Of a stretch of 64,000 bases of DNA, positions 1-64,000 are shown piece by piece (position 1 is the stretch's first letter; each line of letters starts with the position of its first letter). A program made the position numbers and the translations under genes. The notes below the pieces were generated by a model. It did no database searches, was not told the DNA's origin, and worked only from the letters and a program-made list of their open reading frames with translations. Location of the stretch: sequence record OP292654.1; one strand, 5' to 3'.

Positions 1-71
1 AGAACATGGGCGAAGACGCCAACGGTGAACTCGTTATCCTGGACTACGGTCTACAAGATTAAAAAAAGTCC

Positions 72-100
72 TTGACAGGGCTTAACGATTCCGGTACTAT
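72..100 (+). promoter_or_regulatory. sigma70-type promoter
   Basis: TTGACA-N17-TACTAT preceded by A-tract/AAAAGTCC. Confidence 0.8.
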
Positions 101-191
101 GTACCACATCGACGGATGTAAAGCGTGATTATGGTACACTTCATGTCGAAGGTACTTATCTTATGAATAAAGAAAAAGGGCATTACAAAAC

Positions 192-407
192 ATGGCTAAA
201 AACACTATTACTGATATTGGCGAAGTAGAACGCAACGTGAACTACATTCAGTTCCAGATTGCTCAGGCAGAAGCACTGCTGGCTCCTTTCGCTAACAGCG
301 ATAAGCCAAAGATCTGCTACGCACATCTGCTGGACTGGAAGAAATCGTTGCAGACTGAACTGCACGAAATCCGTAAGGCTCAGCAAAAGGCACGTTACCA
401 CAAGTAA
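192..407 (+). CDS. hypothetical protein
   Basis: ORF with RBS downstream of promoter. Confidence 0.7.
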   Translation: MAKNTITDIGEVERNVNYIQFQIAQAEALLAPFANSDKPKICYAHLLDWKKSLQTELHEIRKAQQKARYHK

Positions 408-474
408 TTGCCAGCCGTTATGCCGTTAACGATGTTAGCGGCATCTTTTAAGTAAGTAATAGGGAAGACGTATC

Positions 475-717
475 ATGAAAAGTGCTACAGAACTGAAAAA
501 CCTACACAAACGAATTGAACTCTTGAAAGGTCAATTGGCGATGGTTAGTACCGAAATCAAAGAACTTGACGCTAAAGAGAACAAAACGAAAGACGAAACA
601 AAGCATCTTGCTAAGTCTCGTCAGTTACAAACCAACCTAATCTATGATATTCGTGGTCGTCAATTGGACTTCAACGATTTGAAAGAAGTGGTTATTTCTG
701 AAATCATCAACTCTTAA
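475..717 (+). CDS. hypothetical coiled-coil protein
   Basis: ORF with GGGAAG RBS. Confidence 0.7.
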   Translation: MKSATELKNLHKRIELLKGQLAMVSTEIKELDAKENKTKDETKHLAKSRQLQTNLIYDIRGRQLDFNDLKEVVISEIINS

Positions 718-729
718 CTGGAGAGAAAA

Positions 730-1206
730 ATGGCTGCTATAGCATTGTATTGTTTGCTGGGAGCTTTAGTACTGTTCATCTTGTGGATGTTGATTGTAAC
801 ATCATCTATGGGTACTGAACGTCTTAAAACCGCTCAGTTCTTAATGTCATCTTTGACTTATAACGAAGAAGCAACTATCAAGTTGAACCTTCTGATGGAT
901 AAGTATGAAGCTGGCCTATTAACTGTTCGCCGTGAACCAAAAGAACTTATCTTTACCGATAAGGAAACTGGTCAACGTGCGGGTGTGATTTGGGTTGGTA
1001 ACAAGTACTACTCTTATGGCAATCTGTACCGTTACGGTGCTAATGATAGTAAAGATTGGGCTTGTAACAAATCTGACATTAAAACTTTCAAGCGTGTGAT
1101 CAAGCTTGAAAAATCTCTGGATAACACTTCTGGTAATCAGGTTTCTCCTGACGCACCAAAACAGGCTACTAAACGTAGCTCAGATGAAGAAGTGATTCTG
1201 GACTAA
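730..1206 (+). CDS. hypothetical membrane-anchored protein
   Basis: N-terminal hydrophobic helix; GGAG RBS; terminator follows. Confidence 0.7.
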   Translation: MAAIALYCLLGALVLFILWMLIVTSSMGTERLKTAQFLMSSLTYNEEATIKLNLLMDKYEAGLLTVRREPKELIFTDKETGQRAGVIWVGNKYYSYGNLYRYGANDSKDWACNKSDIKTFKRVIKLEKSLDNTSGNQVSPDAPKQATKRSSDEEVILD

Positions 1207-1242
1207 GGGCGGCAACGCCCTATTTTAAATGAGAGGTACATC

Positions 1243-1926
1243 ATGAGTATCATTGAACGAGCAAAGCGTAATGTTTCTGTAAGTGAATTTGAAAACAATG
1301 TTGAACCAATTGAGTTATCGAAAGTTGATGTAGTATGTCCTTTTGATGAACAATATATCCTGCGTATGTGTGTATGTGCTGATGGTGAAAATCTGGTACT
1401 TCCTGATAATCTCCGTTGGATGACTCCAGTACTAGTAGAAGCCATTAACCATCAGAAGAATGCGATGGACGGCGATAAACAGTACTGCTACATTACTGTA
1501 CGCCACGGTGTTGTTAAATCTGTAACTGATGACGAATGGCATGTTGACGGTTTCAGTACTAAGGTCGCTCACGTTCCTGAACAGAACTACATTTGGACTA
1601 ACCGTATTCCGACAGAATACACCAATGTTTCTGTGAAGTTCCCTGATGATTTTGATCCACTGAAACACAATGTAAACCACTTCCTGGAACAGAACATCAC
1701 TGGAGAAGTAAAAAGTTGTAAAGAGAATGTTGTGTACTGTATGGACCCGTACATTCTTCATCGTCGTCCAAAGGTTAGTACTGGAAAGGTTCGCACGTTT
1801 ATTCGTGTATCCTTTGTACCAATCATGATCAACGATGTAAACAACACACAAAATCCAAAGTTGTTACAACAGTACACTCAAGATGGTGTACAATTTAGGA
1901 ACAAATTAGAAACATATGGCAGCTAA
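1243..1926 (+). CDS. putative 2OG-Fe(II) dioxygenase-like protein
   Basis: WHVDG (HxD) ... LHRRP (distal His) ... RTFIRVSF pattern. Confidence 0.6.
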   Translation: MSIIERAKRNVSVSEFENNVEPIELSKVDVVCPFDEQYILRMCVCADGENLVLPDNLRWMTPVLVEAINHQKNAMDGDKQYCYITVRHGVVKSVTDDEWHVDGFSTKVAHVPEQNYIWTNRIPTEYTNVSVKFPDDFDPLKHNVNHFLEQNITGEVKSCKENVVYCMDPYILHRRPKVSTGKVRTFIRVSFVPIMINDVNNTQNPKLLQQYTQDGVQFRNKLETYGS

Positions 1927-2338
1927 GATTATCTGCGGGTTTCCTGGTATTGGTAAAAGTACTGTAGTACAGAACAATGATAAAGTAATTGACTTAGATA
2001 GTTCTGGCTACAGTAAGATACAAACATTTCCATTGAACTATATTCAGGCTATTATTGATGCTGAGAATGATGGATATGAATATATACTGATCAGTACTCA
2101 TGCATCAGTTAGAAACTTGCTTCAAACACTTGGTATGAAGTATACCAATGTGTATCCTGAAATTGATTTAGGTGAAGAATATATAGAACGTTATAGAGAA
2201 CGTGGTTCTCCAGAAAGTTTTATTAACTTCCTTGAAGAAAATTGGGATGATTTCATCTTCGAATTACAGTATGATGAATCAGATTATATCGAACTTGAAC
2301 CTGGTCAATTTCTTTCAGATGTTTTGAAAAATATTTGA
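1916..2338 (+). CDS. P-loop nucleotide kinase-like protein
   Basis: N-terminal IICGFPGIGKS Walker A followed by IDLDSS. Confidence 0.65.
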   Translation: MAAKIICGFPGIGKSTVVQNNDKVIDLDSSGYSKIQTFPLNYIQAIIDAENDGYEYILISTHASVRNLLQTLGMKYTNVYPEIDLGEEYIERYRERGSPESFINFLEENWDDFIFELQYDESDYIELEPGQFLSDVLKNI

Positions 2339-3392: not shown

Positions 3393-3514
3393 GAGAAAGT
3401 AGCTCAGTTGGTAGAGCAGGTAGAAACCCAAAATTACAGTACTGTAATTTCGCAGCAACCATACTTCATCCACTTTTAATGGCCTGGTCGTTGGTTCGAG
3501 TCCAACCTTTCTCG
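3393..3514 (+). tRNA. trnK: tRNA-Lys(TTT) interrupted by a 49-nt insertion (3421-3469)
   Basis: removing 3421-3469 gives a perfect cloverleaf: GAGAAAG/CTTTCTC, GGCCA-CT TTT AA-TGGCC, GTTGG-TTCGAGT-CCAAC. Confidence 0.85.
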
Positions 3515-5736: not shown

Positions 5737-5851
5737 TGGAATTTAACAGCAATCACTTTCTATCACGCAGCATGTCGCAGGTTCGAGTCCTGTCAGTACT
5801 AGTACTGTAGCTCAGTTGGGAGAGCAGCCGCCTAAAACGAAATAAATTCCA
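5737..5851 (+). ncRNA. CAGCAA-family element with circularly permuted tRNA-Asp-like body (anticodon ATC)
   Basis: TGGAATTTA/TAAATTCCA stem; CT ATC AC-GCAGC-ATGTC-GCAGG-TTCGAGT-CCTGT-CAGTACT then AGTACTG-TA-GCTC AGTTGGGA GAGC-A-GCCGC. Confidence 0.8.
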
Positions 5852-13277: not shown

Positions 13278-13351
13278 ATAGTAGTAAGTCAATTGGTAAC
13301 GACTCCCTATTAAGATTAGGAGAATGTGTGGTTCAAATCCCTCCTACTATT
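13278..13351 (+). pseudogene. degenerate tRNA-like gene, anticodon AAG
   Basis: ATAGTAG/CTACTAT acceptor, AGTC/GACT D-arm, CCTA-TT AAG AT-TAGG; T-stem largely mispaired. Confidence 0.6.
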
Positions 13352-13360
13352 AAGTACTAT

Positions 13361-13433
13361 GCCTCGTTAGCTCAGTTGGTAGAGCATCCGACTTTTAATC
13401 GGAGTGTCACTGGTTCAAGCCCAGTACGGGGTA
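13361..13433 (+). tRNA. trnK: tRNA-Lys(TTT)
   Basis: cloverleaf, TCCGA-CT TTT AA-TCGGA. Confidence 0.95.
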
Positions 13434-13450
13434 CTAACTTTGAGGTACAT

Positions 13451-13636
13451 ATGAAAAGCACAGAAGAACAATTTCTGAATTTATTATCCAAAGACATTGA
13501 TGAACATCCAGAGAACTTAGTACCAGTAAGTACTGAAATGTGGAATAGCATTAAAGAACTAACTGCTGGTGTTGAAGTTGATTTGGATTCACCTATAGAG
13601 GACGATGAAGATGAAACCGGAACAATGGATCATTGA
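13451..13636 (+). CDS. PrlF antitoxin C-terminal-domain-like peptide
   Basis: FLNLLSKDIDEHPENL...ELTAGVEVDLDSPIEDDE resembles the E. coli PrlF C-terminus (FLRFLDADIQNNPQ...KLVAGMDVNIDDEIGDDE, from memory); GAGG RBS. Confidence 0.65.
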   Translation: MKSTEEQFLNLLSKDIDEHPENLVPVSTEMWNSIKELTAGVEVDLDSPIEDDEDETGTMDH

Positions 13637-14964: not shown

Positions 14965-15396
14965 AGTTCAGCAAATGTCCTCTTTGTGGCTGCGAAGGGA
15001 TTCACGCATGTATGGGTGAAAACTCAGTTAACAATGGACTTGACTTGAACAATCCAGCCATGTATAATCGGTTGAAAGATGCGATAGAGCATATTCGAAA
15101 ATCTGAAGCGGAGCGTAAACATGACGACTCAAGTAGTAGCAGTTGATTACTATCATCGCTATGAAGATAGTTCTCATAAAGTACCGTTTAAAGTATTTGA
15201 GAACATTCAGGTGTTCGAAGAATATTGTCTAAAGAACAATATCCAAATTCTGAAAGGTGCGTTCGGTAGTACTTATTACGATCATGAGTACTGTTATTCT
15301 GTAAACCACGTGGAGTACGTTAAATGAAAGATGAACATCCTGACTTTTAACGAAAAACTTGATAGTACTGACACGATGTAGTACTATCATATAATT

Positions 15397-16953: not shown

Positions 16954-17278
16954 AATTTACCTTCTATGTAAGTACTCTTGAATTAAATAATTAGCAGAAC
17001 AAAGTTCTGTTCATTTTAGGAGTACTTACATGAATCTATTAAGTAAAATTTGGTCTTGGATCAAATCAGTATTTGCCGCTTTAAACAAAGAGCCTGAAAA
17101 TTCAGTGCTTGATGTTGGTATCCCTGCCGATCCTAATGGCATCGATGCACCAAGTACTGATGAACCTACTGTTCAACCTGATGCTCCAGCACCAGCTACA
17201 CCAGTAGATCCAAGTCAAAACCAATCTAATTAATGATTAATGAAGGGAGCATATGCTCCCTATTTTTATAGGTACAAT

Positions 17279-19998: not shown

Positions 19999-20667
19999 AT
20001 GCAAGTTCAATTCAAAAACGCTCTGTTCGATTCCGCTCTGTTCGCTTTCGCCGTTGTTAACGGTTCAACCCTGACCATCGTTCTGGAAAACGCAGAAATC
20101 GATCTGGATTTCGACAGCGAAGCTGAAGCTCTGGAAGCTCAGGCTGAACTCGGCGAAGTACTGGACTCCGTAGGTTCCGTATCTAACGTAATCACCGACG
20201 CGGCAAACGCTGTATCCGGTCTGATTTCTGGCCTGTTCGGTACTGCGAAAGCAAAAGTGACCAAAGCAAGCACCGCGAAGTCTGCTGAAGACGTAGCAAC
20301 CACCCTGACCGACATTCTGGAGCAGGCTCTGGCTGGTCGTCCGGCTGCTACCCGCCCAGCGTCACGTTCTACCGCTTCCGAAGCGAATGACGTGTTCGGT
20401 ACTAACCGTACCTCTCGTGCTGATGCGGCTGACACTGTAGTGTCTGAACTGACCGACGCTGCCCTGCGTACCGCGATTGAAGACAAAGCAGCATCCCTGC
20501 TGGCGTCTGATGCTCGTGTCCAGGCAATGGTCGCTCAACTGCGTCGTTTCTACTCTGACGCACAGGTTGACGAAGTGATCGAAGTTCGTAAGTCTCAGGT
20601 GTTCGATTTCGCTCGTGCGAATGGCAATCTGACTCTGAACCAGATTGTTGCTCAAATCCTGCGTTAA
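19999..20667 (+). CDS. hypothetical, likely highly expressed Ala/Ser-rich protein
   Basis: GAGGT RBS; strong CTG/CGT/TTC/AAC codon bias, visibly GC-richer than neighbours. Confidence 0.8.
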   Translation: MQVQFKNALFDSALFAFAVVNGSTLTIVLENAEIDLDFDSEAEALEAQAELGEVLDSVGSVSNVITDAANAVSGLISGLFGTAKAKVTKASTAKSAEDVATTLTDILEQALAGRPAATRPASRSTASEANDVFGTNRTSRADAADTVVSELTDAALRTAIEDKAASLLASDARVQAMVAQLRRFYSDAQVDEVIEVRKSQVFDFARANGNLTLNQIVAQILR

Positions 20668-20682
20668 TTCGCAAACCAAAAC

Positions 20683-20707
20683 AAAGGGAGCCGATGGCTC
20701 CCTTTTT
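20683..20707 (+). terminator. intrinsic terminator
   Basis: AAAGGGAGCC-GAT-GGCTCCCTTTTT. Confidence 0.85.
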
Positions 20708-20721
20708 ACGTTTGAGGTTAT

Positions 20722-21261
20722 ATGAAAATAACTGAACAGTACCGAACGCTTGGCGTTCAAGAGTACTATCAAAATCCAAATACACAAGCTACATACGAAA
20801 ATCCACACCAAGATTACGTTAATGATTGCTTAATGAATTCGTTCTATCAGTACTTTACTGAAGACGCTTCAGTACTGGATCTAGCTTGCGGTAATGGACT
20901 CGTAAGTAATCTTCTTAAGCAATGCGGCGTATCTGATATTGAAGGTGCTGACAAATATATGCACGAACGATATACAGAGGAAACTGGATTTGTATGCTAT
21001 CCATATTCCTTTGAAGATATAGCCGATTTTAATTGTATCTTTGAAAAACGTTATGATGTAATTATATGTAGTTACGCATTCGATTTAGTTCCAGAATCAT
21101 ACAGGCAAAAGCTGTTGTACGCTTTAAGTACTTACACTGATACATTAATATTAATACGACCTAACTCACATATGGTTGAACCTACTATCTGGTTGGATGT
21201 TCATCAATGTAAGTTCCAGAAATCAAGAGCAATAGTATATCAAAAAGAAAGGCACTCATAA
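20722..21261 (+). CDS. class I SAM-dependent methyltransferase
   Basis: VLDLACGNG motif I; GAD; YDVIICSY. Confidence 0.8.
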   Translation: MKITEQYRTLGVQEYYQNPNTQATYENPHQDYVNDCLMNSFYQYFTEDASVLDLACGNGLVSNLLKQCGVSDIEGADKYMHERYTEETGFVCYPYSFEDIADFNCIFEKRYDVIICSYAFDLVPESYRQKLLYALSTYTDTLILIRPNSHMVEPTIWLDVHQCKFQKSRAIVYQKERHS

Positions 21262-21273
21262 GAGTGCCTTTTT
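21243..21273. terminator. bidirectional intrinsic terminator
   Basis: AAAGGCACTC-ATAA-GAGTGCCTTTTT between convergent genes. Confidence 0.8.
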
Positions 21274-21276
21274 GCG

Positions 21277-22410
21277 TTATGCGGTTACGCCAGTAATAAC
21301 AACTTTACCTGTGAAGTTCTCTGAACTTTCAAGAGTGATGTTATCTGAATTATCAATACTAACTAGTACTTGTACAAGATTACCAGCAGAATCATATACT
21401 GATAATGATGGGCTTTGTTTCAAGTGTGTGCTATATGGAATAGACATTGTAAAATCTGAACCACTAGATGACCAAACTAGAGAAGTACTGTAAACAGTTC
21501 TCACATTAGTTGGACCAACAATTATAATATCATAATCTGTATTATCAGTTTGAGTCACTGTGATGTTTCCAGAAGTATCTACGCTAACATCTGGATTATA
21601 GATAGTACCATTAATATTTTGAATCTGAACTACAACATTCGAGCCACGATTGTGAACTGTATTTGCTAATGTAAAGGTATATGTACCATCACCATTATCT
21701 GTCATTTGAGTTCCAGATACTGCGTACATAGTAACATAATCAGTATCAGCTTCACTTACAATAGGAACATCAACTTCCTTGGTATTGTATTTTGGTGATG
21801 TGATTGTAATTACTGCATTACCAGTTTCTGATACCACAACATCTGTGAATGTAAAGTTACGACCATCAAGTGTTGCTGTGTAAGTAACACCTTCGATTTC
21901 CATTGTAACAACCATTCCAGTAGTATCTAGAGAACCACTAACGGCACTAATAGTACCTGTAACAGTAGTAGTACCAATTGCGATAGTACTAACAGTTACT
22001 TCACCAATATCAATTGGGCCAATACTACATTCTGGTACATACATATCGAACATATATCTACCGTCTGCTAAACAGACTTTATTATTTTGGAAACGAATAA
22101 CGAATCCTGTTACGGACATGTCGCTATTATATCCACGAACAAAGAATGTATTGACTGGAATTTCATTTAAAAGTTCATCATCAGTTTTTGAATAATCAAG
22201 AACATCATTATTTGAATCATAACCGGTAATACGTACATATTGATAAATGACATTTGTATCATAGTCCATTAAATCAAAGATGTTTACTGAACGTTGTTTG
22301 AAAATGCGTATATTCTTTAACTTAACATTATTTTTAAGTAATGCCCCATCAACAATATAACCACATTCACCATATCTATATTCATTAACACCTGCTATTG
22401 GGTGAGCCAT
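21277..22410 (-). CDS. putative virion structural protein (Thr/Val-rich beta/Ig-like domains)
   Basis: 377 aa, GGAGG RBS, composition typical of tail/baseplate beta-sandwich proteins. Confidence 0.6.
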   Translation of the reverse strand: MAHPIAGVNEYRYGECGYIVDGALLKNNVKLKNIRIFKQRSVNIFDLMDYDTNVIYQYVRITGYDSNNDVLDYSKTDDELLNEIPVNTFFVRGYNSDMSVTGFVIRFQNNKVCLADGRYMFDMYVPECSIGPIDIGEVTVSTIAIGTTTVTGTISAVSGSLDTTGMVVTMEIEGVTYTATLDGRNFTFTDVVVSETGNAVITITSPKYNTKEVDVPIVSEADTDYVTMYAVSGTQMTDNGDGTYTFTLANTVHNRGSNVVVQIQNINGTIYNPDVSVDTSGNITVTQTDNTDYDIIIVGPTNVRTVYSTSLVWSSSGSDFTMSIPYSTHLKQSPSLSVYDSAGNLVQVLVSIDNSDNITLESSENFTGKVVITGVTA

Positions 22411-22588
22411 ATGGGTATCCTCCGAAGTTATTTCCAGTATTTATCCCGTTTTCCTTATTTTTCCTTGAATTTTCAGAGGGATTCTGGTATTATTTCGTGG
22501 AGTGCAAAAGAGCCTCCGATAATATTCCTCCTTGACGGGCAGGATAAGATTTTGTTATAATGGGGTTCAATTAATTGAGGTACAAAAT

Positions 22589-23167
22589 ATGACACGTTTA
22601 ATCATTCGTGAAGATAAAATGAAGATTCGTTTACATCACGACGAAGCTGAGTCCTTTATGGCTAAAGCAATTGCTAAGGCTGAGAAGTTCTCTAAAATCG
22701 CACCAGCAGGAAAGTCGCCTTATGGCTTCAATCATGCTCACTCTCACTTAGTGGGAATGGCTGCGGAACATGCGTCGTGGTTACTGTTCAATGAGATTGA
22801 AGCATTGACGAATCGTAATCTTAATATTGATCCTGCGTTCCAGGATGAAAAACGTGAAGGTGAATGTGATCTCTATGTAGGTGGAGTTCGCATTGAAGTA
22901 AAAGGTATTAAGTACGGTTCTTGGTTACGCTTCGGTCCATGTATTAGCTCTCGTCAGCTTCCTAAGATTCAAAAGAAAGCTGACATAGTACTATGGGCGT
23001 TGTATAACGAGAAGTGTCAGGAGTTCACTTTCGAAGGTTATAACCTCGTATCAGAAATTGCGGCAATTCCAACTATCATGACTGGTGCTGAAGGTCGTGA
23101 AAAGATTGAGAACTATCCGGTAATTAGTATTCTTAAGCCATTACAAGATCTTGCGTTAGGAGCATAA
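22589..23167 (+). CDS. putative PD-(D/E)xK nuclease-fold protein
   Basis: CDLYVGGVRIEVKG (D..EVK); GAGG RBS at ATG 22589; TTGACG promoter at 22532. Confidence 0.5.
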   Translation: MTRLIIREDKMKIRLHHDEAESFMAKAIAKAEKFSKIAPAGKSPYGFNHAHSHLVGMAAEHASWLLFNEIEALTNRNLNIDPAFQDEKREGECDLYVGGVRIEVKGIKYGSWLRFGPCISSRQLPKIQKKADIVLWALYNEKCQEFTFEGYNLVSEIAAIPTIMTGAEGREKIENYPVISILKPLQDLALGA

Positions 23168-23168
23168 A

Positions 23169-23474
23169 ATGAAATTCTGTACATTGCTTTTTATTATTCT
23201 GGTGGCGTGGATTATTACACCTGAATCAAAAGCAAGTGAGCTACATAACTATGCGTACTGTTCAGGGTACGCAGGTAAAATGTCTCAGGTATATAAGATG
23301 AAGTACTATCGCGACATGCAACAGTACTTTGATTCGAAAGTACAACAACCAGATGTAGATGCTATCACATCTGAGTACTACCAAAGTGGTGCTGAACTTG
23401 TTCGTACCGATGTTGGTATTGGTAAGAACCTAATTACGAAATGTGAAGAAGCCTATAAACGGAGGATGCCATGA
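23169..23474 (+). CDS. hypothetical secreted/periplasmic protein
   Basis: signal-peptide-like N-terminus, Cys pair. Confidence 0.65.
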   Translation: MKFCTLLFIILVAWIITPESKASELHNYAYCSGYAGKMSQVYKMKYYRDMQQYFDSKVQQPDVDAITSEYYQSGAELVRTDVGIGKNLITKCEEAYKRRMP

Positions 23475-23950
23475 CAATATTAGCATATACGTTTATGATC
23501 ATGTTTACTATTATTCATAGTTTCATGTGCGGCGGTTTTGCTTTTCGTTCAGTATATGCGTATAAAGTATCTAACTCAGTACTGGAGTTCATTAAGAACT
23601 ACTTTTGGTCTTATACTCTTACGTATAAACAAATACAAGAATCACAAACATTTATACCTGAAGTTAATGCTAAGCTAGAAAAATTATTATCACTAGCATT
23701 AATAGAGAAGGTGGGTGTAGGTTACTCTACAAGCTGGCGTGATGACGGGGCTAAAACACTTCGTATTCAAAAAGATCGTCTTTTAGATAATTCATCAGAA
23801 ACGGTACATTTTGGATTTCAACGAAGTGAAATAAATGGAACAACGTTTATACTTACTCCATCAGTGTTTTTCTTAGCACAAAAAGTGTACGAAAAACTGT
23901 TGGAAGAAGAAGAAAACGACAAAGAAGAACAGCGTAAGAATACAATATAA
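23471..23950 (+). CDS. hypothetical membrane-anchored protein
   Basis: GGAGG RBS, N-terminal TM. Confidence 0.65.
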   Translation: MTILAYTFMIMFTIIHSFMCGGFAFRSVYAYKVSNSVLEFIKNYFWSYTLTYKQIQESQTFIPEVNAKLEKLLSLALIEKVGVGYSTSWRDDGAKTLRIQKDRLLDNSSETVHFGFQRSEINGTTFILTPSVFFLAQKVYEKLLEEEENDKEEQRKNTI

Positions 23951-24020
23951 TTAGCGTATATCTGCTGTATATGGTATAATTAAGATGTAAACAAAATTTA
24001 ACTGTACGAGAGGTTCCGCT

Positions 24021-24554
24021 ATGTCATCTGTACTCGCAACTAAAATTACTAAAGCGATGATTAACCGTGCTGGTTATATCCCGCTGGAAACTATTACCGA
24101 TGAAGGTGGTTTCCTCGGCATCTTCGATGAAAGTTTTATGTACTATACTTTCAAAGATTGCCTCAAGGTTCAGGACGCGAACTTTAATAAGTGGGTTTGC
24201 TATTGGGAAGGTGTACCATTCGCAGTTGTCTGCGATGTGAAAGCAGATAAACTGGTTAATGGATTTGTTAAGATTGCTATTCTTAGCAAAACCGAAGTAC
24301 CGATTTCTGAAATTGGTGCAATGCCAGGTAACAGTAATACTACGTTTGGTCATATCGTTAACGGAAAATTCATGAACGCCAAAGCTGTTCAGAAGTTCGT
24401 TACTGAAGGTCTAAGTCGTGGTACTTCAGTTGGTGTTGATGTTCAGGTTGCTCAACCTGTTCAACGTAAAGCTGATAAAACAGTACTGAGCAACGACGAG
24501 ATTAAGAATCTCAAAGAAGCAATGGCGAAGAATTGGGGCGTAACCCTGAAATAA
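24021..24554 (+). CDS. hypothetical protein
   Basis: GAGG RBS, terminator follows. Confidence 0.7.
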   Translation: MSSVLATKITKAMINRAGYIPLETITDEGGFLGIFDESFMYYTFKDCLKVQDANFNKWVCYWEGVPFAVVCDVKADKLVNGFVKIAILSKTEVPISEIGAMPGNSNTTFGHIVNGKFMNAKAVQKFVTEGLSRGTSVGVDVQVAQPVQRKADKTVLSNDEIKNLKEAMAKNWGVTLK

Positions 24555-24595
24555 CAACAAGGGGAACTATGTTCCCCGTTTTAACTGGAGATGCT

Positions 24596-25060
24596 ATGAA
24601 GCGTTCTAATATTGTTCTCTTTACTTCCTTAGCTGCTGTAGTGGAATTGATCGTATTGGGTGTTGAATTCAATGAAAAGTTCCGTTTCGTTAACAGTACG
24701 CTGGAATTCAAATACTGGTTGGTATGTACTATCATGTACGTAGGTGCGACAATATTATCAGTGTTCCATCTGGTGACTCATGCTGATGATAGTGAGCGAA
24801 CTAAGAAACAAAACTACTTAGAAGCATTTGGAACTGAACATGTGAGCTTTTTGTTCACGTATCACTTCCTTCTGTTCGCAGTACTATGTTTCTATGTCAG
24901 TGCCTGGCCGTGGTTTATTATGGGCTGTGTTATGTTTTGGGTTCATAACTACGTTCATCGTGATAACCAGAACAACTATGCGTTAGAATACGCAATCGAA
25001 GAAGCAAAGATCGCAGCACGTAAACCTGTAGTTCTTAACAGTTCAGACGACTTATTGTAA
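24596..25060 (+). CDS. multi-pass membrane protein
   Basis: several hydrophobic helices; GGAG RBS. Confidence 0.65.
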   Translation: MKRSNIVLFTSLAAVVELIVLGVEFNEKFRFVNSTLEFKYWLVCTIMYVGATILSVFHLVTHADDSERTKKQNYLEAFGTEHVSFLFTYHFLLFAVLCFYVSAWPWFIMGCVMFWVHNYVHRDNQNNYALEYAIEEAKIAARKPVVLNSSDDLL

Positions 25061-25071
25061 GGAACAAAGCA

Positions 25072-25506
25072 ATGTCATATTCACGTACACTCAAAAATTC
25101 TCTTATCGGAGTATTCGCAATCCTTGCGATCTTCTTCTATAAATTCTGTGCTACTCAGTTCCATTTACCAACGTTCCTTTCTGGACAATGGTATACACTG
25201 ACAGCAGTACTAGTTTCGTTAATTTCACTGGCGTCATGGTGTTTGATACCATTTCACCTGTGTTTGTTATTCGAAGTCGATAAGTCATGCCGCGAAATGC
25301 GTGTATCATTATACAACGCATTAGGCGATAAACCACTTAGCATTGCGTGGCAAATCGTCGTATTCATTATGACTGGTATCTTGTTCCAATATGGTTACTA
25401 CATGGTAAGCATTGGTTTACTTGGTATTGGTTTTAATATCATGACTTTCCGTATGATGCATAATAGCATTATTCGTAAAGCATCAGTACAAGTACTAAAA
25501 ACCTAA
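25072..25506 (+). CDS. multi-pass membrane protein
   Basis: four hydrophobic helices. Confidence 0.7.
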   Translation: MSYSRTLKNSLIGVFAILAIFFYKFCATQFHLPTFLSGQWYTLTAVLVSLISLASWCLIPFHLCLLFEVDKSCREMRVSLYNALGDKPLSIAWQIVVFIMTGILFQYGYYMVSIGLLGIGFNIMTFRMMHNSIIRKASVQVLKT

Positions 25507-25516
25507 GAGGTAATTT

Positions 25517-26137
25517 ATGGCAGCATTCAATGTTGGCGAAGAAGTAGAAGTAGTAAGTACTGGCGAAACCAGTACTATTGAAGCAGTAACTAAAAATATC
25601 TGGCGTCAGGATCGTTATAAGATTTTTGGTAACAGTACTAAGTTCAAAGAAAGTGAACTGCGTCGTGTTACACAATCTGCGTATACTGGTGCTACCAGTG
25701 CTGATCTTGATGAACCAGATATTGTGTCTCAGGTAGTACTGGCAACTGTACTAATGGATCAGATGGATGATATTAATCAGGATGTAGCTAACCTGAATAG
25801 CACAATCCCTGAACCAGTAGTTCAGACTGAAGCCGTAATTCCAGAAACTGTTACTGAGAAAGTAACAAGCTACATGGAAGAACGCCAGACACAATGGGAA
25901 GCACCGGTAAGTACTGAATCGAAATCGGTTGATGTTGATACATCATACAGCCGTTCAAGTTCGGTAGATGATAGTTCATCTTCATGGCGTTCAAGTTCAG
26001 TTGATGACAGTTCATCCAGTTCTTCTCGTTGGAGTTCTTCAAGTGATGATTCAAGTTCATCTTGGAGTTCTTCAAGTTCAGATAGTTCTTCATATGACAG
26101 TGGTAGTTCATCATCGTCATCAAGTTCTGACTGGTAA
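25517..26137 (+). CDS. hypothetical protein with Ser/Asp-rich disordered tail
   Basis: GAGG RBS; C-terminal SSSSVDDSSSSW repeats. Confidence 0.7.
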   Translation: MAAFNVGEEVEVVSTGETSTIEAVTKNIWRQDRYKIFGNSTKFKESELRRVTQSAYTGATSADLDEPDIVSQVVLATVLMDQMDDINQDVANLNSTIPEPVVQTEAVIPETVTEKVTSYMEERQTQWEAPVSTESKSVDVDTSYSRSSSVDDSSSSWRSSSVDDSSSSSSRWSSSSDDSSSSWSSSSSDSSSYDSGSSSSSSSSDW

Positions 26138-27741: not shown

Positions 27742-27794
27742 TTCCATTGTCCAGTACTTCAGTACTGGACATTTTTAATTGAGAGGATAATATT

Positions 27795-33272: not shown

Positions 33273-33768
33273 TAACTGAGGTAACTCATGAACCCAAGTG
33301 AAGCGAAAGCTAAACAAAAGAAAAGGTATAATGAGATAGCAGTACTAGTAGCTAACGGAAGGTTAGGTTATATTCCTGCTAATAAATCTCGTTTCAGTAA
33401 ATCAGCTTCAAATAAATTTGCTCAAGATATTAGTTTCAATTAAGGAAGTACTATGAAACAATTCTGTATAGCTTTTTTAGTAGTGCTGGTCTTTTTTGCT
33501 GGTGAAATTTTATTGCTATCCATTCACACTCCTAAACCAGAAACGTCTAAAGTAACGCCATATAGCGAGATACAAGCTAAGCAGAAGCGTTTAGAACAAG
33601 CTAAAGCTGAACTTGACGATGATTGCTCTATCGCGATGTGTAGTGCGTTTGGTGGCGGTATAGCAGGGGATACCCTAGCCATTCAATTTATGAATGGTGA
33701 TTGAAAGTCCTTGACGGGGCTGAACCATAATGATAAGATGTACTCACTATCAAGGCGAGGACATTATT

Positions 33769-36548: not shown

Positions 36549-37754
36549 ATGTTAACAGTAACGTCTGAAAAGACAAGTTTACGTGATTTGACAATCGCAG
36601 AACTTCGCCGTGTCGCTTGGGAACATATCGATCCAAGCGAATTTGTTGAGGATTTCAATGATTTGAATTTCCTCGCTCGTGTAAACTATGCGTCACGTCG
36701 CACTATTGCGAATTGGGTTGATTGGGGTTCTATCCTTTGTGTGATGAATGAACCTGCACTTGATTTCGTCATCAGTACTCGTAAACAGGTATCTCGCTCT
36801 CGTTTCTATCTAGATAGTGAAATGTGGGGTTATGAAAAGCAATATAGTCTGGAATTCCTGACTAAACATGCTAAACACCTGTATCTGAATGGTGCTCACC
36901 AGCAGAAGTGTATTACTCCTGAGTTCTTGGAGAAATTCGAAGATCATATCAATTATAGTCACTTCTTTGAACGTTTCCTTCAGACACGTGACATTGATGT
37001 ACTTCGTGAGTTCCTGATGTATAAAGATGGTTTGTTCCGTCGTTATATTATGCAATCACGTAGTATGCGTTACCTGAACCGTGAAGCACTGGAAGAACTG
37101 AATCAGCCAGTACCGGACTATTACGATACAGTGATCACTGAACAACGTATCATGTCTGGTCAGCCGTGCGATGATGGTCAGCGTTCATTCACTATTTGGC
37201 TGCGTAAGTTCCGTCGCGTTACTGGTCGTCCGAACGACTATCCAACATGGAACGAAATGTTGACTCTGATGAAATCACATCCTCGTTTGAACCAGAACGG
37301 ATATGTCGATTGGATCATGGGTCGCTGCCTGGAGAATACACCAGAGGAAGTTGCTCAGTATCCAGAACGTTTGAGCTTCAATCCTAAGCGTGTAGAACGT
37401 GATGCGTATCGGCACATCACTGGTACTGATGAAACTACTGGTGACGCAGATTTCAATATTGAATTTGCTGATGTGATTAACCCACAACCAGTACAGACTC
37501 AGGCTGAAAGTACTGAAAGTACTGAAAGTACTGGTAATTCAGAACAAGCAGAATCACCAATGGCAGCACTTGATCGGGCTATTGCTGCGATGATCGAAGG
37601 TCGTGTAACACCACAAATGGTACAGCCGATGGCAGCACCAATCACCTTCGCCAATCTTCGTATGCCTAGCTTCATGGCTTTCCAAACTGAAAGTACTGAC
37701 CACCCAGCATCATCTGACGATGGTGATTCGGGAAGTGATGAACCTGAAGCCTAA
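36549..37754 (+). CDS. helical-repeat protein, CxxG paralog family
   Basis: QPCDDG...PTWNEM; acidic disordered tail. Confidence 0.8.
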   Translation: MLTVTSEKTSLRDLTIAELRRVAWEHIDPSEFVEDFNDLNFLARVNYASRRTIANWVDWGSILCVMNEPALDFVISTRKQVSRSRFYLDSEMWGYEKQYSLEFLTKHAKHLYLNGAHQQKCITPEFLEKFEDHINYSHFFERFLQTRDIDVLREFLMYKDGLFRRYIMQSRSMRYLNREALEELNQPVPDYYDTVITEQRIMSGQPCDDGQRSFTIWLRKFRRVTGRPNDYPTWNEMLTLMKSHPRLNQNGYVDWIMGRCLENTPEEVAQYPERLSFNPKRVERDAYRHITGTDETTGDADFNIEFADVINPQPVQTQAESTESTESTGNSEQAESPMAALDRAIAAMIEGRVTPQMVQPMAAPITFANLRMPSFMAFQTESTDHPASSDDGDSGSDEPEA

Positions 37755-60626: not shown

Positions 60627-60638
60627 ATTTTTTATCCT

Positions 60639-61565
60639 TTATGTCAATTTAAATGCTTGTGAAGTAACAGGTGATTTTCCACCTAATGTCAATATGAAGT
60701 TATCCTGTACTGAAGCAAATATATTCGCGTCAATAGCATAACCTGGTATAGTACTCAAAAATATTAAATTACTTAAATCAGATTTGTATAATGAACCAGT
60801 ATCAAATCCCATTAACGCAACCGTACCTTTAAAATATTCAATACGCCCTATCTGTGTTGAAGTACTGAACATTATATTCCAAACATTACTATCAGTACTG
60901 TACCTCATTAAATGATATGTACCTCCTGAACCTGGTGTTCCTGAACCACCCTGTACACCCATACTGTAAAAGTCTGAACCAATCATAAACGATGAACTCG
61001 CATAGGACATTGGATAAGGCGATGTAGCTAATGTACTCCAAGTATTAGAAGCAATATCATATGAATGCATTGTATTCGCAGATGCCTGTGTATAGTAATC
61101 ACCGAACAAATATAACTTCCCATTGTAGTACTGCATTGTACTATGTACCCTAGCCGCCGGTAAAGTTCCTGAACCTACTATAGCTGAACTCCAAGTTCCT
61201 GTATCAATACTATATCTGTACATGTCATTACGCTTCGTACTCAATGACGGAGTTCCAGTACTTCCACCAAAAACATATATCATGTTATTAACAGAATCAT
61301 GTGCCATTGCTGACCCACCACGAACACCCTGTGGATGCTGTAATAAAGAACTCCACGTATCAGTACTAGCTGTGTACTTCCAAAAGTCTCTGTAGTATGT
61401 AGTACTGTTAACTCCACCTAAAGCATATATGTCTCCTGATGGAGTCCTACAATATCCCATCTCAGCACGTACCGACATTGCCGAATAAGTATTTGCTTCA
61501 TAATTACCTAAGAATGTTGGTACTACAACGTTCCCGTACTCTACTAATTGTGGAAATGGTAACAT
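60639..61565 (-). CDS. MLPFP-array protein, Kelch beta-propeller
   Basis: IYALGG..YTASTDTWS; IYVFGG..YSIDTGTWS; LYLFG..YDIASNTWS. Confidence 0.8.
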   Translation of the reverse strand: MLPFPQLVEYGNVVVPTFLGNYEANTYSAMSVRAEMGYCRTPSGDIYALGGVNSTTYYRDFWKYTASTDTWSSLLQHPQGVRGGSAMAHDSVNNMIYVFGGSTGTPSLSTKRNDMYRYSIDTGTWSSAIVGSGTLPAARVHSTMQYYNGKLYLFGDYYTQASANTMHSYDIASNTWSTLATSPYPMSYASSSFMIGSDFYSMGVQGGSGTPGSGGTYHLMRYSTDSNVWNIMFSTSTQIGRIEYFKGTVALMGFDTGSLYKSDLSNLIFLSTIPGYAIDANIFASVQDNFILTLGGKSPVTSQAFKLT

Positions 61566-61575
61566 CTATTTCTCC

Positions 61576-63642
61576 TTATTGTACCTTCCATGTGTTTGTA
61601 CTCGCAGAAGAAGAACTTCCACCAATCCAGTATACCTTACCTTGATTAGTACTAGCTCCTAATACAAATCTGTCACCCATCGTAGTTCCTGAACCTACTA
61701 CACTCCATAAGTTAGAAGCTAATCTGTACGCACGTAATTGAGCACCACTCGTACTTAACTGATAGATAAATCCATTACAATATACCATCCTCGCAGTTCC
61801 TGAACCCTTAGCTGATAATAATACCCACATACTCTTACTAACTATGTATTTGTAAAACGTTGAGTTCGTTGTACAAATGTATAAATCAGTACCGTCAGTA
61901 ACCATATCTGTATTAACATCCTGTGTGCCTATATCACTAGGTACTGTAGATATTAATGTGAATGTATTCGTACCAGGATCAAATCTGTAAAAGTTATTCG
62001 AAGTACTAAATCCTGTACCACCAAATATATAGATGGACGCACCAATAGCACACATCTTAGCAAAATCCCTCGCCCCTGGCGTTCCCGTAGTACTCAATAA
62101 CGTAAACACTCCAGTACTCAAATCTACACTATGCATCGTGTTTGTAGTACTTCCACCTGTACTCGTGATTCGTCCACCAAATATGTATAACTTATCATTG
62201 TATACCGTTATACATGCCCCGTACTTCGCAATAGCACTTGCATCCATAGGAACCTGTGTCCAAGCATCTGTCGGAACATCATATATCCATATGTCACTCT
62301 GCATCGTGTTACCACTAACTAAAGCACCACCATAGACTATAAACTTGTCAGTACCATATGGACATACAGCATGACCATATCTAGCCATGTTCGGTACTGT
62401 AGTACTTATATTACTGTACGCACCACTTATAGGTGCTTCACTTGTCCATAATACCGATTGCGGTGTACTCATTAATGTCCATGTCGTCGCATTCGCCGAT
62501 AACAATGAATTAGCAGTACTACCAGTTACATAGACTTCATCCTTCACTACAGCATAAGCATTAGATGGATTGTTACATAAGTATCTAATATCCGCTGTGT
62601 CTAATCTGCTCATTGCTCCAGTACTAGCATTGATTAATGTAGTAGTAGGATTCGTCGCAATACCTGTTCCTAACAAATAACTGTTGTTCAATCCTACTGC
62701 CTTTAATCCTGAACTCGTTCCTATAAAAGTACTGTAATAATACCCACTAGATGAAATGATATTATTCGCTCCAGATGTAACAGGTATGTATGGACTCGAT
62801 ACATATGTACTAGGTGATGTTGTTCCATTACCTGCTTGATATTGCCCATTATTACCATATATACGAACACCACCATCAGTTCCCAATATCCATAAATTAT
62901 AATCATTTACAGATAACTTCTGTATTCCTACAGTACCATTGATAGTGTACTGCTGAAATGTCGTTCTTACACTGCTCGTAGTACTGTCAGCTAAGGTTCC
63001 ATATGTATTTGTACCACATCTCCAATATGTCCCGTCCAACTTCTTTATCCATGTAACGTTCTGACCAAAATAAACCTCAGAAACATTATCACCATTAGGA
63101 ATCTGTACTAACGTATAAATCGAAGCAGTACTAGTAGCATTACCTAACGCATTGTATTGATTACTTCCTATACCCCATAAATGATTGTTAACATCAATTA
63201 CATAAAAACGAGAAGGACTGTTCTCATACAAATATATCGCCTTAATTGTAGATATATCAAATGTACTAAACACTGAAGTCATATCAGTCCATGTACTTGT
63301 GTTAACTAAACCATATCCCTGACCCGCCGAGTTCGCAAAAGCATTCGTTATATTACCTGAATACCAAGCAGTATTATCCTTCTTTATAATAACAGTACTA
63401 ACATTCGAACTAGCACATAAACGTACATTAGTATTAACTCTACTCCAAGCACCACTAATAGCTGTAGTATTCCCCGTTCCAAATAAACTGTTACTTGAAC
63501 CATTAAACCCTAAAGCATACAAATCACCATTGTCATATAGGATAGTTTGGGCTGAATTGTACGTAACATTAAATTGCTTTATAAGCTTTATCTCAGGAAT
63601 AATGTTGTTCCCGTAATAAACTAATTGTGGAAAAGGTAACAT
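61576..63642 (-). CDS. MLPFP-array protein, RCC1-like + Kelch double propeller
   Basis: N-half LWGIGSNQY/YGNNGQYQAG repeats; C-half IVYGG/LYIFGG Kelch repeats; start corrected to 63642. Confidence 0.8.
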   Translation of the reverse strand: MLPFPQLVYYGNNIIPEIKLIKQFNVTYNSAQTILYDNGDLYALGFNGSSNSLFGTGNTTAISGAWSRVNTNVRLCASSNVSTVIIKKDNTAWYSGNITNAFANSAGQGYGLVNTSTWTDMTSVFSTFDISTIKAIYLYENSPSRFYVIDVNNHLWGIGSNQYNALGNATSTASIYTLVQIPNGDNVSEVYFGQNVTWIKKLDGTYWRCGTNTYGTLADSTTSSVRTTFQQYTINGTVGIQKLSVNDYNLWILGTDGGVRIYGNNGQYQAGNGTTSPSTYVSSPYIPVTSGANNIISSSGYYYSTFIGTSSGLKAVGLNNSYLLGTGIATNPTTTLINASTGAMSRLDTADIRYLCNNPSNAYAVVKDEVYVTGSTANSLLSANATTWTLMSTPQSVLWTSEAPISGAYSNISTTVPNMARYGHAVCPYGTDKFIVYGGALVSGNTMQSDIWIYDVPTDAWTQVPMDASAIAKYGACITVYNDKLYIFGGRITSTGGSTTNTMHSVDLSTGVFTLLSTTGTPGARDFAKMCAIGASIYIFGGTGFSTSNNFYRFDPGTNTFTLISTVPSDIGTQDVNTDMVTDGTDLYICTTNSTFYKYIVSKSMWVLLSAKGSGTARMVYCNGFIYQLSTSGAQLRAYRLASNLWSVVGSGTTMGDRFVLGASTNQGKVYWIGGSSSSASTNTWKVQ

Positions 63643-64000
63643 CTTTATCTCCTTATAAAAATTCTTACATGTACTATCATGCACTGATAGTACGTAGTAT
63701 ACGTATTTACCTGCATAGACAGTACTAGACACCTCTTAGAACATCATCTATAATACCCCTATAACCTCCTAGAACGCTCTGTAACGCATCGGTTTGATTC
63801 CTGTAGTATCGCTATTGCGATATCGAAAGGATTCAAACTAGCTAAAATAGCGTTCGCGATATTCTATGTATTAATATACAGTACTGTAAAAATACACAAT
63901 ATGTATAAGCTAACAGTACTATTGAATACTTTAACAGGCACGAGATACTAATGTCAATCCCTTGTATAGTACTGTACCAGTACTGAACCCCCTTCCACTA

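Follow-up and report, generated by a model that had tools for sequence, protein, structure and literature searches.

AGTACT, a highly iterated palindrome of Xanthomonas phage XbC2 and its enterobacterial RaK2-like relatives, as a possible sequence-encoded mark of phage DNA

Restriction sites are normally depleted in phage genomes, and the avoidance of palindromes is a textbook phage trait. The terminal 64 kb of Xanthomonas phage XbC2 (OP292654.1), a RaK2-like jumbo myovirus with a genome of 367.9 kb, raise the question of why one palindrome, AGTACT, is repeated there so constantly, and of what might read it. This stretch of 64,000 nt was analyzed at its full length and is referred to below as the window.

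Abundance of AGTACT in the window, the genome, and the clade

A preliminary description of the window had regarded AGTACT as strongly over-represented throughout, against a rough estimate of one copy per 3 kb. The estimate agreed with the 21.2 copies predicted from base composition, and the excess turned out to be larger than first stated, with 219 copies observed against 21–22 expected; dinucleotide shuffles of the window yielded 22.1 ± 4.5 copies and at most 35. Markov models of orders 0–3 predicted 21, 21, 44, and 96 copies, respectively, and the maximal-order expectation (184 against the 219 observed) was uninformative because the 5-mers on which it is built themselves consist of the motif. 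The array extended over early genes, the tRNA region, intergenic DNA, and minus-strand structural genes, each 4-kb bin of the window holding 9–29 copies against 1.3 expected. Across the whole XbC2 genome, where 1,105 copies were found against 122 expected and each 10-kb bin contained at least 16, AGTACT was the most over-represented of the 4,096 hexamers. The runner-up among the enriched hexamer palindromes in the window reached just 1.6-fold, 27 of the 64 hexamer palindromes had no copy there, and the genome contained zero copies of 25 hexamer palindromes and of GCGC. In the literature searched, AGTACT was not found together with RaK2, 121Q, GAP32, PBECO4, or CBB, and neither a link of AGTACT to phage palindromes nor an earlier description of this excess was found.

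The array and the sites discussed here are as follows.

1..64000, no strand assigned: AGTACT array, n = 219, mean spacing one per 290 bp
768..2098, no strand assigned: eight AGTACT (768, 1004, 1428, 1481, 1555, 1777, 1958, and 2093)
3431..3450, plus strand: 20-nt perfect palindrome AAATTAC-AGTACT-GTAATTT within the tRNA-Lys insert
5795..5806, plus strand: tandem AGTACTAGTACT at the junction of T-arm-like and D-arm-like segments
15364..15385, plus strand: two intergenic AGTACT (15364 and 15380), 16 nt apart
27748..27771, plus strand: intrinsic-terminator-like hairpin followed by a T-run, with AGTACT in each arm
33447..33452, plus strand: AGTACT between a ribosome-binding site and ATG (ggaAGTACTatg)
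37509..37532, plus strand: three AGTACT spaced 9 nt within a CDS, all three different in phage Kaldavass
53193..63642, minus strand: structural genes (RCC1-like, kelch-like), 43 of 49 copies in frame 0 (Ser-Thr)
63880..63984, no strand assigned: four AGTACT in the final 121 nt, non-coding, adjoining the terminal-repeat boundary

The eight copies between 768 and 2098 each lay exactly where they had been placed, and the previously noted occurrences in the tRNA-Lys insert, in the permuted element, near 15360, and in the terminator stem near 27750 were all confirmed. The palindrome at 3431–3450 forms an 8-bp stem in a tRNA-Lys annotated at 3393–3514 (122 nt), the tandem copies sit in a permuted tRNA-like element (approximately 5770–5830), the pair at 15364/15380 lies directly upstream of tRNA-Tyr (15397), and the hairpin at 27748–27771 has a folding energy of −15.7 kcal/mol (z −4.4). 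The layout of ribosome-binding site, AGTACT, and ATG recurs at 45046 and 17021.

An excess of this kind could be a by-product of coding constraints such as Ser-Thr or Val-Leu content, codon usage, or codon pairs, and frame 0 (AGT-ACT, Ser-Thr) indeed held more copies than either other frame, with the Ser/Thr-rich minus-strand structural genes listed above as the clearest example. However, the 186 copies within the window ORFs compared with 49.7 ± 5.8 under synonymous-codon shuffling, 26.6 under codon permutation, and 85.6 ± 7.5 under dinucleotide-preserving synonymous shuffling, and the 967 copies in the genome ORFs with 236, 140, and 389, respectively. The excess in codon-aware shuffles amounted to 3.7–7-fold, with z of 13–33 in the window and 44–70 in the genome; it thus persisted in all three shuffles under the control for codon and amino-acid composition (Ser-Thr, Val-Leu) that had been fixed beforehand. 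The frame distribution also spoke against the coding explanation, as AGTACT was enriched 3–4-fold in each of the three reading frames of the window, non-coding DNA was as dense as coding DNA there (3.3 and 3.4 per kb) and denser genome-wide (3.5 per kb in non-ORF DNA against 2.95 per kb in ORFs), and the flanks of the motif are symmetric. The claim of a genome-wide signal at the DNA level was therefore borne out by the shuffles of both window and genome, which refuted a codon or amino-acid composition artefact and left it a probability close to nil. Ser-Thr dipeptides were spelled AGT-ACT in 101 of 163 cases against 23 expected; moreover, Ser-Thr was over-represented 1.63-fold and Thr-Ser 1.01-fold, and thus the pressure on the DNA bends the protein sequence.

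The phylogenetic limits of the excess were drawn from other phages. It amounted to 6.6–14-fold in every enterobacterial RaK2-like phage sampled, and the enriched genomes comprised Kaldavass, pEa_SNUABM_12, GAP32, CBB, XaC1, EJP2, PHA46, TH47, a 121Q-like phage, a RaK2-like phage, and four IMG/VR genomes, with sigma factors down to 30% identical to that of XbC2. The excess was absent from PA5oct, Atu_ph07, XacN1, Vibrio phage 2.275.O, T4, and an E. coli sample. It is a long-held trait that defines the whole phage clade. At approximately 3 copies per kb in the phage against 0.06 per kb in E. coli, the motif is about 50-fold denser, a contrast that refers to one 50-kb E. coli sample, the stated host of XbC2 being Xanthomonas.

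Flanks, turnover, and spacing of the sites

Among 1,480 pooled AGTACT sites, taken from clade loci that are partly homologous and so not fully independent, the flanks were reverse-complement symmetric, in the form C-AGTACT-G. At position −1, C was raised 2.25-fold and G lowered to 0.5-fold; at position +1, G was raised 2.17-fold and C lowered to 0.47-fold; and T was raised at −3/−4 as was A at +3/+4. The left and right flanks contributed roughly independently, the optimum extended motif was T-T-n-C-AGTACT-G-n-A-A, and the information content was approximately zero outside positions −4 to +4. A longer hidden repeat or copies of a mobile element were rejected, there being no common flank beyond ±4, as were LexA-like inverted half-sites (ACAGTACTGT), for which no fitting A/T preference adjoined CAGTACTG. 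A sequence that reads alike on both strands, flanks included, cannot encode an orientation, and an oriented motif of the Chi, KOPS, or DUS type was likewise dismissed; E. coli Chi occurred three times here against 0.74 expected, which was not significant.

Comparison with Kaldavass, which is 87% identical to XbC2 over window positions 20000–26000, revealed that 76–78% of the AGTACT sites were retained, where hexamers on average reached 57–60%, which placed AGTACT 29th of 959. Exchange of the site with words one mismatch away amounted to 4.6% against a median of 1.9%, or 2.4-fold (rank 2 of 959). Sites specific to one genome numbered 31 in XbC2 and 22 in Kaldavass. Retention exceeded the background in all eight comparisons made (z 0.5–4.2), most clearly at 76% identity, where 56% of AGTACT was retained against a background of 23%. 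With both higher retention and faster creation, the positions therefore turn over while the density holds. The exchanges with Kaldavass fell at all six positions and included both transitions and transversions, one-mismatch neighbours at the outer positions were approximately 2-fold enriched, and none of the near-cognate words was depleted on both strands.

Coverage by the array was even. The coefficient of variation of the gaps was 0.924 against 1.03 ± 0.03 expected, gaps longer than 1 kb numbered 44 against 57.6, and 1-kb intervals devoid of AGTACT numbered 12 against 21; the trend was repeated in 14 of 15 clade loci, which are partly homologous and not fully independent. Short gaps matched expectation after self-exclusion was modelled, and the spacing showed neither helical (10–11 nt) periodicity nor clustering. 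The density peaked at the terminus: the first 600 nt of the genome are its densest 600 nt (11 copies, the runner-up having 8), CBB with the same start terminus carries 10 copies in its first 600 nt, and the last 121 nt together with the first 610 nt of XbC2 hold 15 AGTACT in 760 nt, the densest cluster of the genome.

Candidate readings of the array

We tentatively read AGTACT as a HIP1-like dispersed array of weakly selected candidate sites for a symmetric DNA-binding factor that may function as a self tag, a reading that we judge to fall slightly short of an even chance. The motif would then be a highly iterated palindrome of enterobacterial RaK2-like jumbo phages with approximately 1,100 putative recognition sites per genome, each under presumably weak selection. 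The putative reader would bind duplex DNA with two-fold symmetry, the most plausible candidate being a dimeric protein encoded by the phage, and would be expected to prefer an TTnCAGTACTGnAA oligonucleotide over a scrambled control. The array might serve as a sequence-encoded tag by which the phage machinery would handle its own chemically ordinary DNA differently from that of the host, possibly in packaging or terminus recognition, in protection of ends and of entering DNA, or in organizing replicating DNA. The enrichment, its basis in the DNA, the symmetry, the limits on the phage tree, the turnover at constant density, the even coverage, and the terminal peak are observed; we infer that a protein may read AGTACT, that this reader may be of phage origin, and that the reading may serve a purpose of this kind. 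The further-reaching idea that these jumbo phages mark their genome by sequence instead of chemistry, with a factor reading the array and steering packaging, end protection, or nuclease sparing, is speculative and unlikely. A binding-site or self-mark role had been suggested in the preliminary description; such a role, maybe linked to packaging or DNA ends, fits the symmetric flanks, the retention together with gain, the few site-free stretches, and the peak at the terminal-repeat boundary, but no single function is singled out by these data. The one obvious dimeric helix-turn-helix candidate assessed (Pfam HTH_37, window 30201–30422) was rejected as the reader on account of its phyletic range, being confined to four Mimasvirus phages. 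Among 10 window proteins and 9 others of the genome, scanned against Pfam and PHROGs, there was no restriction-enzyme-like or telling match.

A methylation mark, which had been proposed as well, was not supported, as only GATC, CCWGG, and TGCAT were found to be modified when native and amplified Kaldavass DNA were compared by nanopore sequencing (PMC11780129). More broadly, AGTACT could be the target of a modification, M.ScaI-type N4-cytosine methylation or other, serving as an epigenetic self mark: HIP1 with its orphan methyltransferases provides a precedent (PMC4390886), XbC2 encodes an N6_N4-family methyltransferase lacking an assigned specificity, and heavy methylation of RaK2 DNA has been reported (PMC3622015). 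Against this, no modification at AGTACT was reported for Kaldavass, a relative assessed by one detection method, despite 8.9-fold enrichment (46 kb sampled). In addition, the three DNA methyltransferase genes of XbC2 (families Dam, N6_N4, and C5) match the three modified motifs and therefore none need remain for AGTACT, and the heavy purging of other palindromes is that of phage DNA without general protection. We hence consider a modification target improbable. A ScaI-type restriction-modification target was discarded, since AGTACT is 9–13-fold enriched and not avoided, with no methyltransferase to spare and no modification reported.

The best-known repair bias of the very-short-patch kind has small effects. 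A phage repair or gene-conversion activity of this kind could nonetheless turn near-cognates into functionless AGTACT by neutral drive, which would equally give retention and excess gain, and the high neighbour-to-site exchange, the turnover of positions in both genomes, and the enriched outer-position neighbours agree with it. The distribution of exchanges over six positions, by transitions as well as transversions, nevertheless points to no single mismatch type and rejects a VSP-type single-mismatch repair signature, and depletion on both strands was seen for none of the near-cognate words. Pure mutation pressure would moreover be freest in non-coding DNA, yet the densities there and in ORFs are 3.5 and 2.95 per kb, and uniform mutation is not expected to produce the deficit of site-free stretches or the sharp terminus peak; HIP1, too, has been argued to be selected and not replenished via biased repair (PMC5861425). 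Neutral drive is accordingly unlikely in our view. The sites could also be acted on by a symmetric phage enzyme rather than held by a binding protein, the candidates being a T4-type topoisomerase II (4-nt stagger around GTAC) and a nicking or cutting endonuclease whose cuts would seed recombination-dependent replication or concatemer processing. The two-fold-symmetric motif with its GTAC core, the 1.9-fold enrichment of GTAC also outside AGTACT, the phage genes for topoisomerase II subunits and Mre11/Rad50-type recombination nucleases, and the density peak at the terminus generated by concatemer cutting are all consistent with such an enzyme. The same enzymes are, however, typical of T4-like phages, and T4 lacks the enrichment; we are aware of no genome that is enriched throughout in topoisomerase sites. 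Motif-linked nicks were detected from the same type of data in another phage but none were reported for Kaldavass (PMC11780129). The probability of an enzyme of this kind is thus low.

The host nucleoid-occlusion protein SlmA occurs in Enterobacterales, the hosts of the enriched clade, and the array could be imagined as a decoy for, or an activator of, this protein. Like the phage motif, the E. coli SlmA site GTGAGTACTCAC is palindromic with a central AGTACT, and it has a dimeric helix-turn-helix reader; this 12-bp palindrome needs G1, T2, purine 3, A4, G5, and pyrimidine 6 (PMC3020112). The required G-T-purine flanks are missing or counter-selected at the phage sites: at the base corresponding to position 3 these favour C and are depleted in G, and they lack any preference for G-T. 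GAGTACTC was approximately 4-fold depleted among the sites (12 against about 48), and the window held no full site, with no match to GTRAGYRCTYAC. On these flank preferences and the missing match, a SlmA site was rejected, and a role of SlmA is highly improbable.

Comparison with known systems

The clade of approximately 75 sequenced Enterobacterales jumbo phages completely purges 25 hexamer palindromes and GCGC, yet it carries one palindrome at 9–13-fold excess, which points to an undescribed interaction of the phage with its own DNA. A self-tag function of AGTACT, if real, would account for the way in which T4-related phages that lack hypermodified bases discriminate between their own and host DNA. 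Marking by sequence, if true, would be the viral equivalent of Chi and DNA-uptake sequences and would achieve by another route what the modified cytosine does in T4. The motif is identical to the recognition site of ScaI/Eco255I, a type of site usually depleted in phages, whereas XbC2 enriches AGTACT while purging 25 palindromes and GCGC. ScaI would cut the XbC2 genome approximately every 330 bp, which together with AGTACT as a pull-down bait provides a handle for experiments, and AGTACT density offers a one-line classifier of this phage clade in metagenomes.

Chi (RecBCD), DUS/USS (DNA uptake), and KOPS (FtsK) likewise consist of many weakly selected intragenic copies for self-recognition, whose density is kept while single positions turn over. 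These motifs are asymmetric and orientation-dependent and have known readers; to our knowledge, none of them is a phage-wide palindrome. The motif WACTRTGAC of phages T5, tf, and Rembedalsseter is also short and conserved in a phage group, but it is strand-specific, linked to nicks, and present in about 10 copies (PMC11780129), whereas AGTACT is palindromic, numbers about 1,100, and has no reported nicks.

The comparison with HIP1 drawn in the preliminary description proved apt. AGTACT lies far above expectation after composition and codon-usage controls, occurs in every reading frame as well as between genes, and is conserved between related genomes beyond background. HIP1 (GCGATCGC) of cyanobacteria is similarly a short palindrome, hyper-abundant genome-wide in genes (every frame) and intergenic DNA, with conservation above neutral, non-random spacing, and no peptide- or RNA-level explanation (PMC5861425, PMC4390886). 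The phage would also lend itself as a model in which the HIP1 question, 30 years old, becomes tractable, the system being far below a cyanobacterium in size and amenable to recoding and reporters. HIP1 is an octamer of cellular chromosomes, enriched 15–300-fold and methylated by two orphan methyltransferases; AGTACT, in contrast, is a viral hexamer (extended to an octamer) enriched 9–13-fold, with no modification detected in a close relative, and it is densest at the genome terminus and occurs in a genome from which other palindromes are purged to an extreme degree.

Extent of the AGTACT excess

The window matched the final 64,000 nt of the genome of Xanthomonas phage XbC2 (OP292654.1; nucleotides 303,902-367,901) with 100% identity. 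XbC2, a jumbo myovirus, belongs to the genus Mimasvirus and has a genome of 367,901 bp. Since the record puts the direct terminal repeat at the genome start (PMC11273794), the last window base adjoins the terminal-repeat boundary. The early region of the window consisted of small plus-strand ORFs with 21-23 tRNA genes in between, and two further landmarks are as follows.

30653-31648: sigma-70-like gene
from ~53.2 kb on, minus strand: structural gene block

The large terminase was annotated as two adjoining ORFs, XbC2_270 and XbC2_271 (L027:47904-50000 and L028:1-244 of the genome pieces), directly upstream of which XbC2_269 (166 aa, phrog_15898, a function-unknown family) occupied the small-terminase position of T4. 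The tRNA region directly upstream of the window includes a tRNA that the record labels 'tRNA-Pyl' (L030:12074-12147; genome 292074-292147); its CTA anticodon would make it a potential amber suppressor. The G+C content of XbC2 was 37.5% and its recorded host is Xanthomonas vesicatoria; Xanthomonas is a genus of high G+C. All relatives of XbC2 have Enterobacterales hosts, and metagenomes from tobacco, soil, rhizosphere, food fermentation and wastewater contained near relatives.

AGTACT occurred 219 times in the window, as compared with 22.1 ± 4.5 copies (maximum 35) in dinucleotide shuffles and 21.2 expected from base composition. The over-representation reported in the preliminary description was thus confirmed, and every coordinate and example listed there was correct. 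The runner-up among hexamer palindromes reached only 1.6x. Markov expectations of order 0-4 were 21, 21, 44, 96 and 184, climbing with order because the sub-words themselves consist of the motif; T followed 68% of the AGTAC 5-mers. In the whole genome, joined from eight pieces (L022, L025-L030 and the window), AGTACT ranked first among 4,096 hexamers, its 1,105 copies being 9.0x the 122 expected, and each 10-kb bin held at least 16. The extended form CAGTACTG was present in 176 copies (4.3 expected).

Meanwhile, 27 of the 64 hexamer palindromes had no copy in the window and 25 had none in the 367.9-kb genome. GCGC was missing from the genome (450 expected), from the window (shuffles predicted 64) and from the 21-kb loci of six relatives (L013-L018). 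The purging of restriction sites is unusually complete. In the window, TGCA and CTAG reached 0.30x and 0.41x of expectation, respectively. TGCAT is an unexplained modified motif in the close relative Kaldavass (PMC11780129), and its core was hence depleted as well as modified.

The excess was 6.6-14x in every enterobacterial RaK2-like jumbo phage sampled, namely Kaldavass, pEa_SNUABM_12, GAP32, CBB, XaC1, EJP2, Salmonella PHA46, TH47, a 121Q-like phage and a RaK2-like phage of Klebsiella, as well as four genomes from IMG/VR. In the 12 clade loci ranked (L013-L018 being left out), AGTACT was first or second among 4,096 hexamers. As the sigma factors of these phages are just 30-75% identical to that of XbC2, their DNA lies far beyond saturation, which implied that the trait must be under active maintenance. 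There was no excess, or even a depletion of the word, in the wider relatives PA5oct (1 copy vs 8.4 expected), Atu_ph07 (1 vs 6.7), XacN1 (0 vs 5.1) and Vibrio phage 2.275.O (3 vs 5.3), or in T4 (3 vs 8.5). Nor was any seen in one 50-kb sample of E. coli K-12 (3 vs 11.6), relative to which the phage DNA was ~50x denser in AGTACT, although this host comparison concerns a single E. coli sample whereas the stated host of XbC2 is Xanthomonas.

Coding context and symmetry of the motif

ORFs were called mechanically and compared with the annotation of the record. The window ORFs contained 186 copies of AGTACT, split by frame 101/36/49, as against 49.7 ± 5.8 upon within-gene synonymous codon shuffling (protein and codon usage kept), 26.6 upon codon permutation, and 85.6 ± 7.5 when the synonymous shuffle kept dinucleotides too. 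Genome-wide, 967 copies in ORFs were compared with 236, 140 and 389 in the synonymous, codon-permuted and dinucleotide-keeping shuffles, respectively (z 44-70). The enrichment was 3-4x in every reading frame, and the density was 3.3/kb in non-ORF DNA vs 3.4/kb in ORFs of the window (3.5/kb vs 2.95/kb in the genome). The three shuffles, the all-frame enrichment and the non-ORF density ruled out a codon or amino-acid artefact, the explanation that the preliminary description had itself set against its proposal: the excess persisted at 186 vs 26.6-85.6. The pressure is instead visible in the protein sequences, where 101 of 163 Ser-Thr dipeptides were spelt AGT-ACT (23 expected) and 73 of 126 Val-Leu dipeptides GTA-CTN (30.6 expected), Ser-Thr being over-represented 1.63x vs 1.01x for Thr-Ser.

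Across 1,480 pooled sites, and also in the window alone, the information in the flanks was confined to positions near AGTACT and was reverse-complement symmetric. In the pooled sites, position -1 favored C (2.25x) over G (0.5x) and position +1 favored G (2.17x) over C (0.47x), with T elevated at -3/-4 and A at +3/+4. In the window, 32 pairs of C and G flanks were counted (38 expected), and in relatives 162 (140 expected); the left and right flanks are roughly independent, a pattern that suits two half-sites better than it suits a mixed population of sites with an asymmetric 7-mer on one or the other strand. GTAC not within AGTACT was enriched 1.9x, and GGTACC and CGTACG had no copies. Neither helical periodicity nor clustering of the sites was found, and the flank analysis ruled out an extended repeat surrounding them. 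The region is transcribed almost wholly from one strand, yet the motif and its flanks are symmetric, which favors a two-fold-symmetric agent that recognizes duplex DNA and speaks against an RNA or translation signal.

Several individual elements of the window carried the motif. At 17021, 33447 and 45046, AGTACT sat exactly in the spacer from a Shine-Dalgarno-like GGA/AGG to ATG (e.g. ggaAGTACTatg). In a permuted tRNA-like element (5770-5830), for which ARAGORN made no tRNA call, the T-arm-like GGTTCGAGTCCTG preceded the D-arm-like GTAGCTCAGTTGGGAGAGC with AGTACTAGTACT as the junction. The 122-nt tRNA-Lys(TTT) annotated in the record at 3393-3514, likewise not reported by ARAGORN, contained a perfect 20-nt palindrome within an insert of ~48 nt, and this tRNA may be interrupted, for instance by an intron.

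Retention, spacing and the genome terminus

In an unpolarised conservation analysis over 43 kb aligned with Kaldavass at 89% identity, 76-78% of the AGTACT copies were kept, as compared with 57-60% for all hexamers (rank 29 of 959), including 22 of 23 non-coding copies. Exchange between AGTACT and its one-mismatch neighbors was 4.6% vs a median of 1.9%, ranking second of 959 after the overlapping CAGTAC. Lineage-specific sites numbered 31 in XbC2 and 22 in Kaldavass, and the differences hit all six positions, transitions and transversions alike. Each of the eight comparisons showed excess retention (z 0.5-4.2), such as those with pEa_SNUABM_12 (56% against 23%) and CBB (45% against 21%), the effect being weak with GAP32 and with one of the IMG/VR genomes. 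Less loss together with more gain is the signature expected of a weak per-site directional force; from the site-to-neighbor ratio, we infer a bias per site of roughly e^S = 6-10.

After correction for regional density and the impossibility of overlapping copies, the coefficient of variation of the gaps in the XbC2 genome was 0.924 vs 1.03 ± 0.03 (none of 2,000 simulations equally low). The gaps were more even than random because long ones are too few: those above 1 kb numbered 44 (57.6 expected) and empty 1-kb windows 12 (21 expected), while short gaps matched expectation. The same tendency was seen in 14 of 15 clade loci, which are partly homologous.

Per 10 kb, the terminal repeat and the early regions held the most copies of AGTACT (30-56), and the structural and replication core the fewest (16-30). 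The non-coding first 600 nt of the genome formed the densest 600-nt window, with 11 copies (runner-up 8), and 15 copies fell within 760 nt at the terminal-repeat boundary, four of them in the final 121 nt of the window. CBB, which starts at the homologous terminus, had 10 in its first 600 nt. The left terminus, non-coding over the first 1.7 kb (L022:1-1725), may function in packaging or in recognition of the terminus. XbC2 and CBB (L031:1-600) begin almost identically (TATCYGTTCCTGAAGTC...), and several AAATCT-type words accompanied the AGTACT cluster in the first 150 nt of XbC2.

Candidate explanations and known systems

The features to be fitted together were the symmetry, the retention with gain, the even coverage, a density nearly equal in constrained and unconstrained DNA, the limitation to one clade, the host contrast and the terminus peak. 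Most likely, as the simplest model consistent with all of them, the AGTACT sites would form a dispersed, weakly selected array recognized by a dimeric or otherwise two-fold-symmetric factor on duplex phage DNA, and could serve as a sequence-encoded self-DNA tag. Selection on many interchangeable sites predicts the observed loss and gain, although a neutral conversion drive, if biased, would mimic this pattern. The sites might also be those of a symmetric enzyme, e.g. topoisomerase II or a recombination nuclease. Given the terminus peak, the most attractive specific roles of the array would lie in packaging or recognition of the terminus, or in protecting the entering end. Among the options raised in the preliminary description, a binding site or self mark, perhaps linked to packaging, would fit the symmetry, the retention and gain, and the terminus peak, and a methylation mark was disfavored. 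Native-versus-amplified nanopore sequencing of Kaldavass detected modified GATC, CCWGG and TGCAT and no modification at AGTACT (PMC11780129), indirect evidence that also speaks against a cryptic modification, and the three methyltransferase genes of XbC2 (families Dam, N6_N4 and C5) match these three motifs in number.

A decoy for SlmA, the host nucleoid-occlusion protein, would explain the AGTACT core shared with its site GTGAGTACTCAC. SlmA, however, requires G, T and a purine ahead of the core (PMC3020112), flanks that the phage sites lack: they prefer C where the purine is needed, GAGTACTC was ~4x depleted among them, and the degenerate SlmA pattern gave no matches in the window, so that this identity was rejected. 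Enrichment of Chi was not significant. Two antitoxin-type small DNA-binding proteins were encoded in the early region (13328-13636 and 30201-30422), one with a PrlF/AbrB-like domain and the other an HTH_37 protein encoded immediately before the sigma factor gene; the latter, present only in four Mimasvirus phages, was dismissed as the reader for its narrow range. Further protein scans for a reader were uninformative.

In full-text searches of openly accessible papers, AGTACT was mentioned neither with any named clade member nor as a phage-enriched palindrome. The array would represent a seemingly undescribed case of a viral highly iterated palindrome that apparently lacks methylation and coexists with extreme palindrome purging. 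The nearest known phenomenon is HIP1 of cyanobacteria, which is over-represented, conserved and non-randomly spaced, with unknown function (PMC5861425). Apart from cognate methylation, which is apparently absent, the AGTACT array shares three of the four HIP features, namely over-representation beyond composition and codon usage, occurrence in every reading frame as well as between genes, and conservation among related genomes above background.
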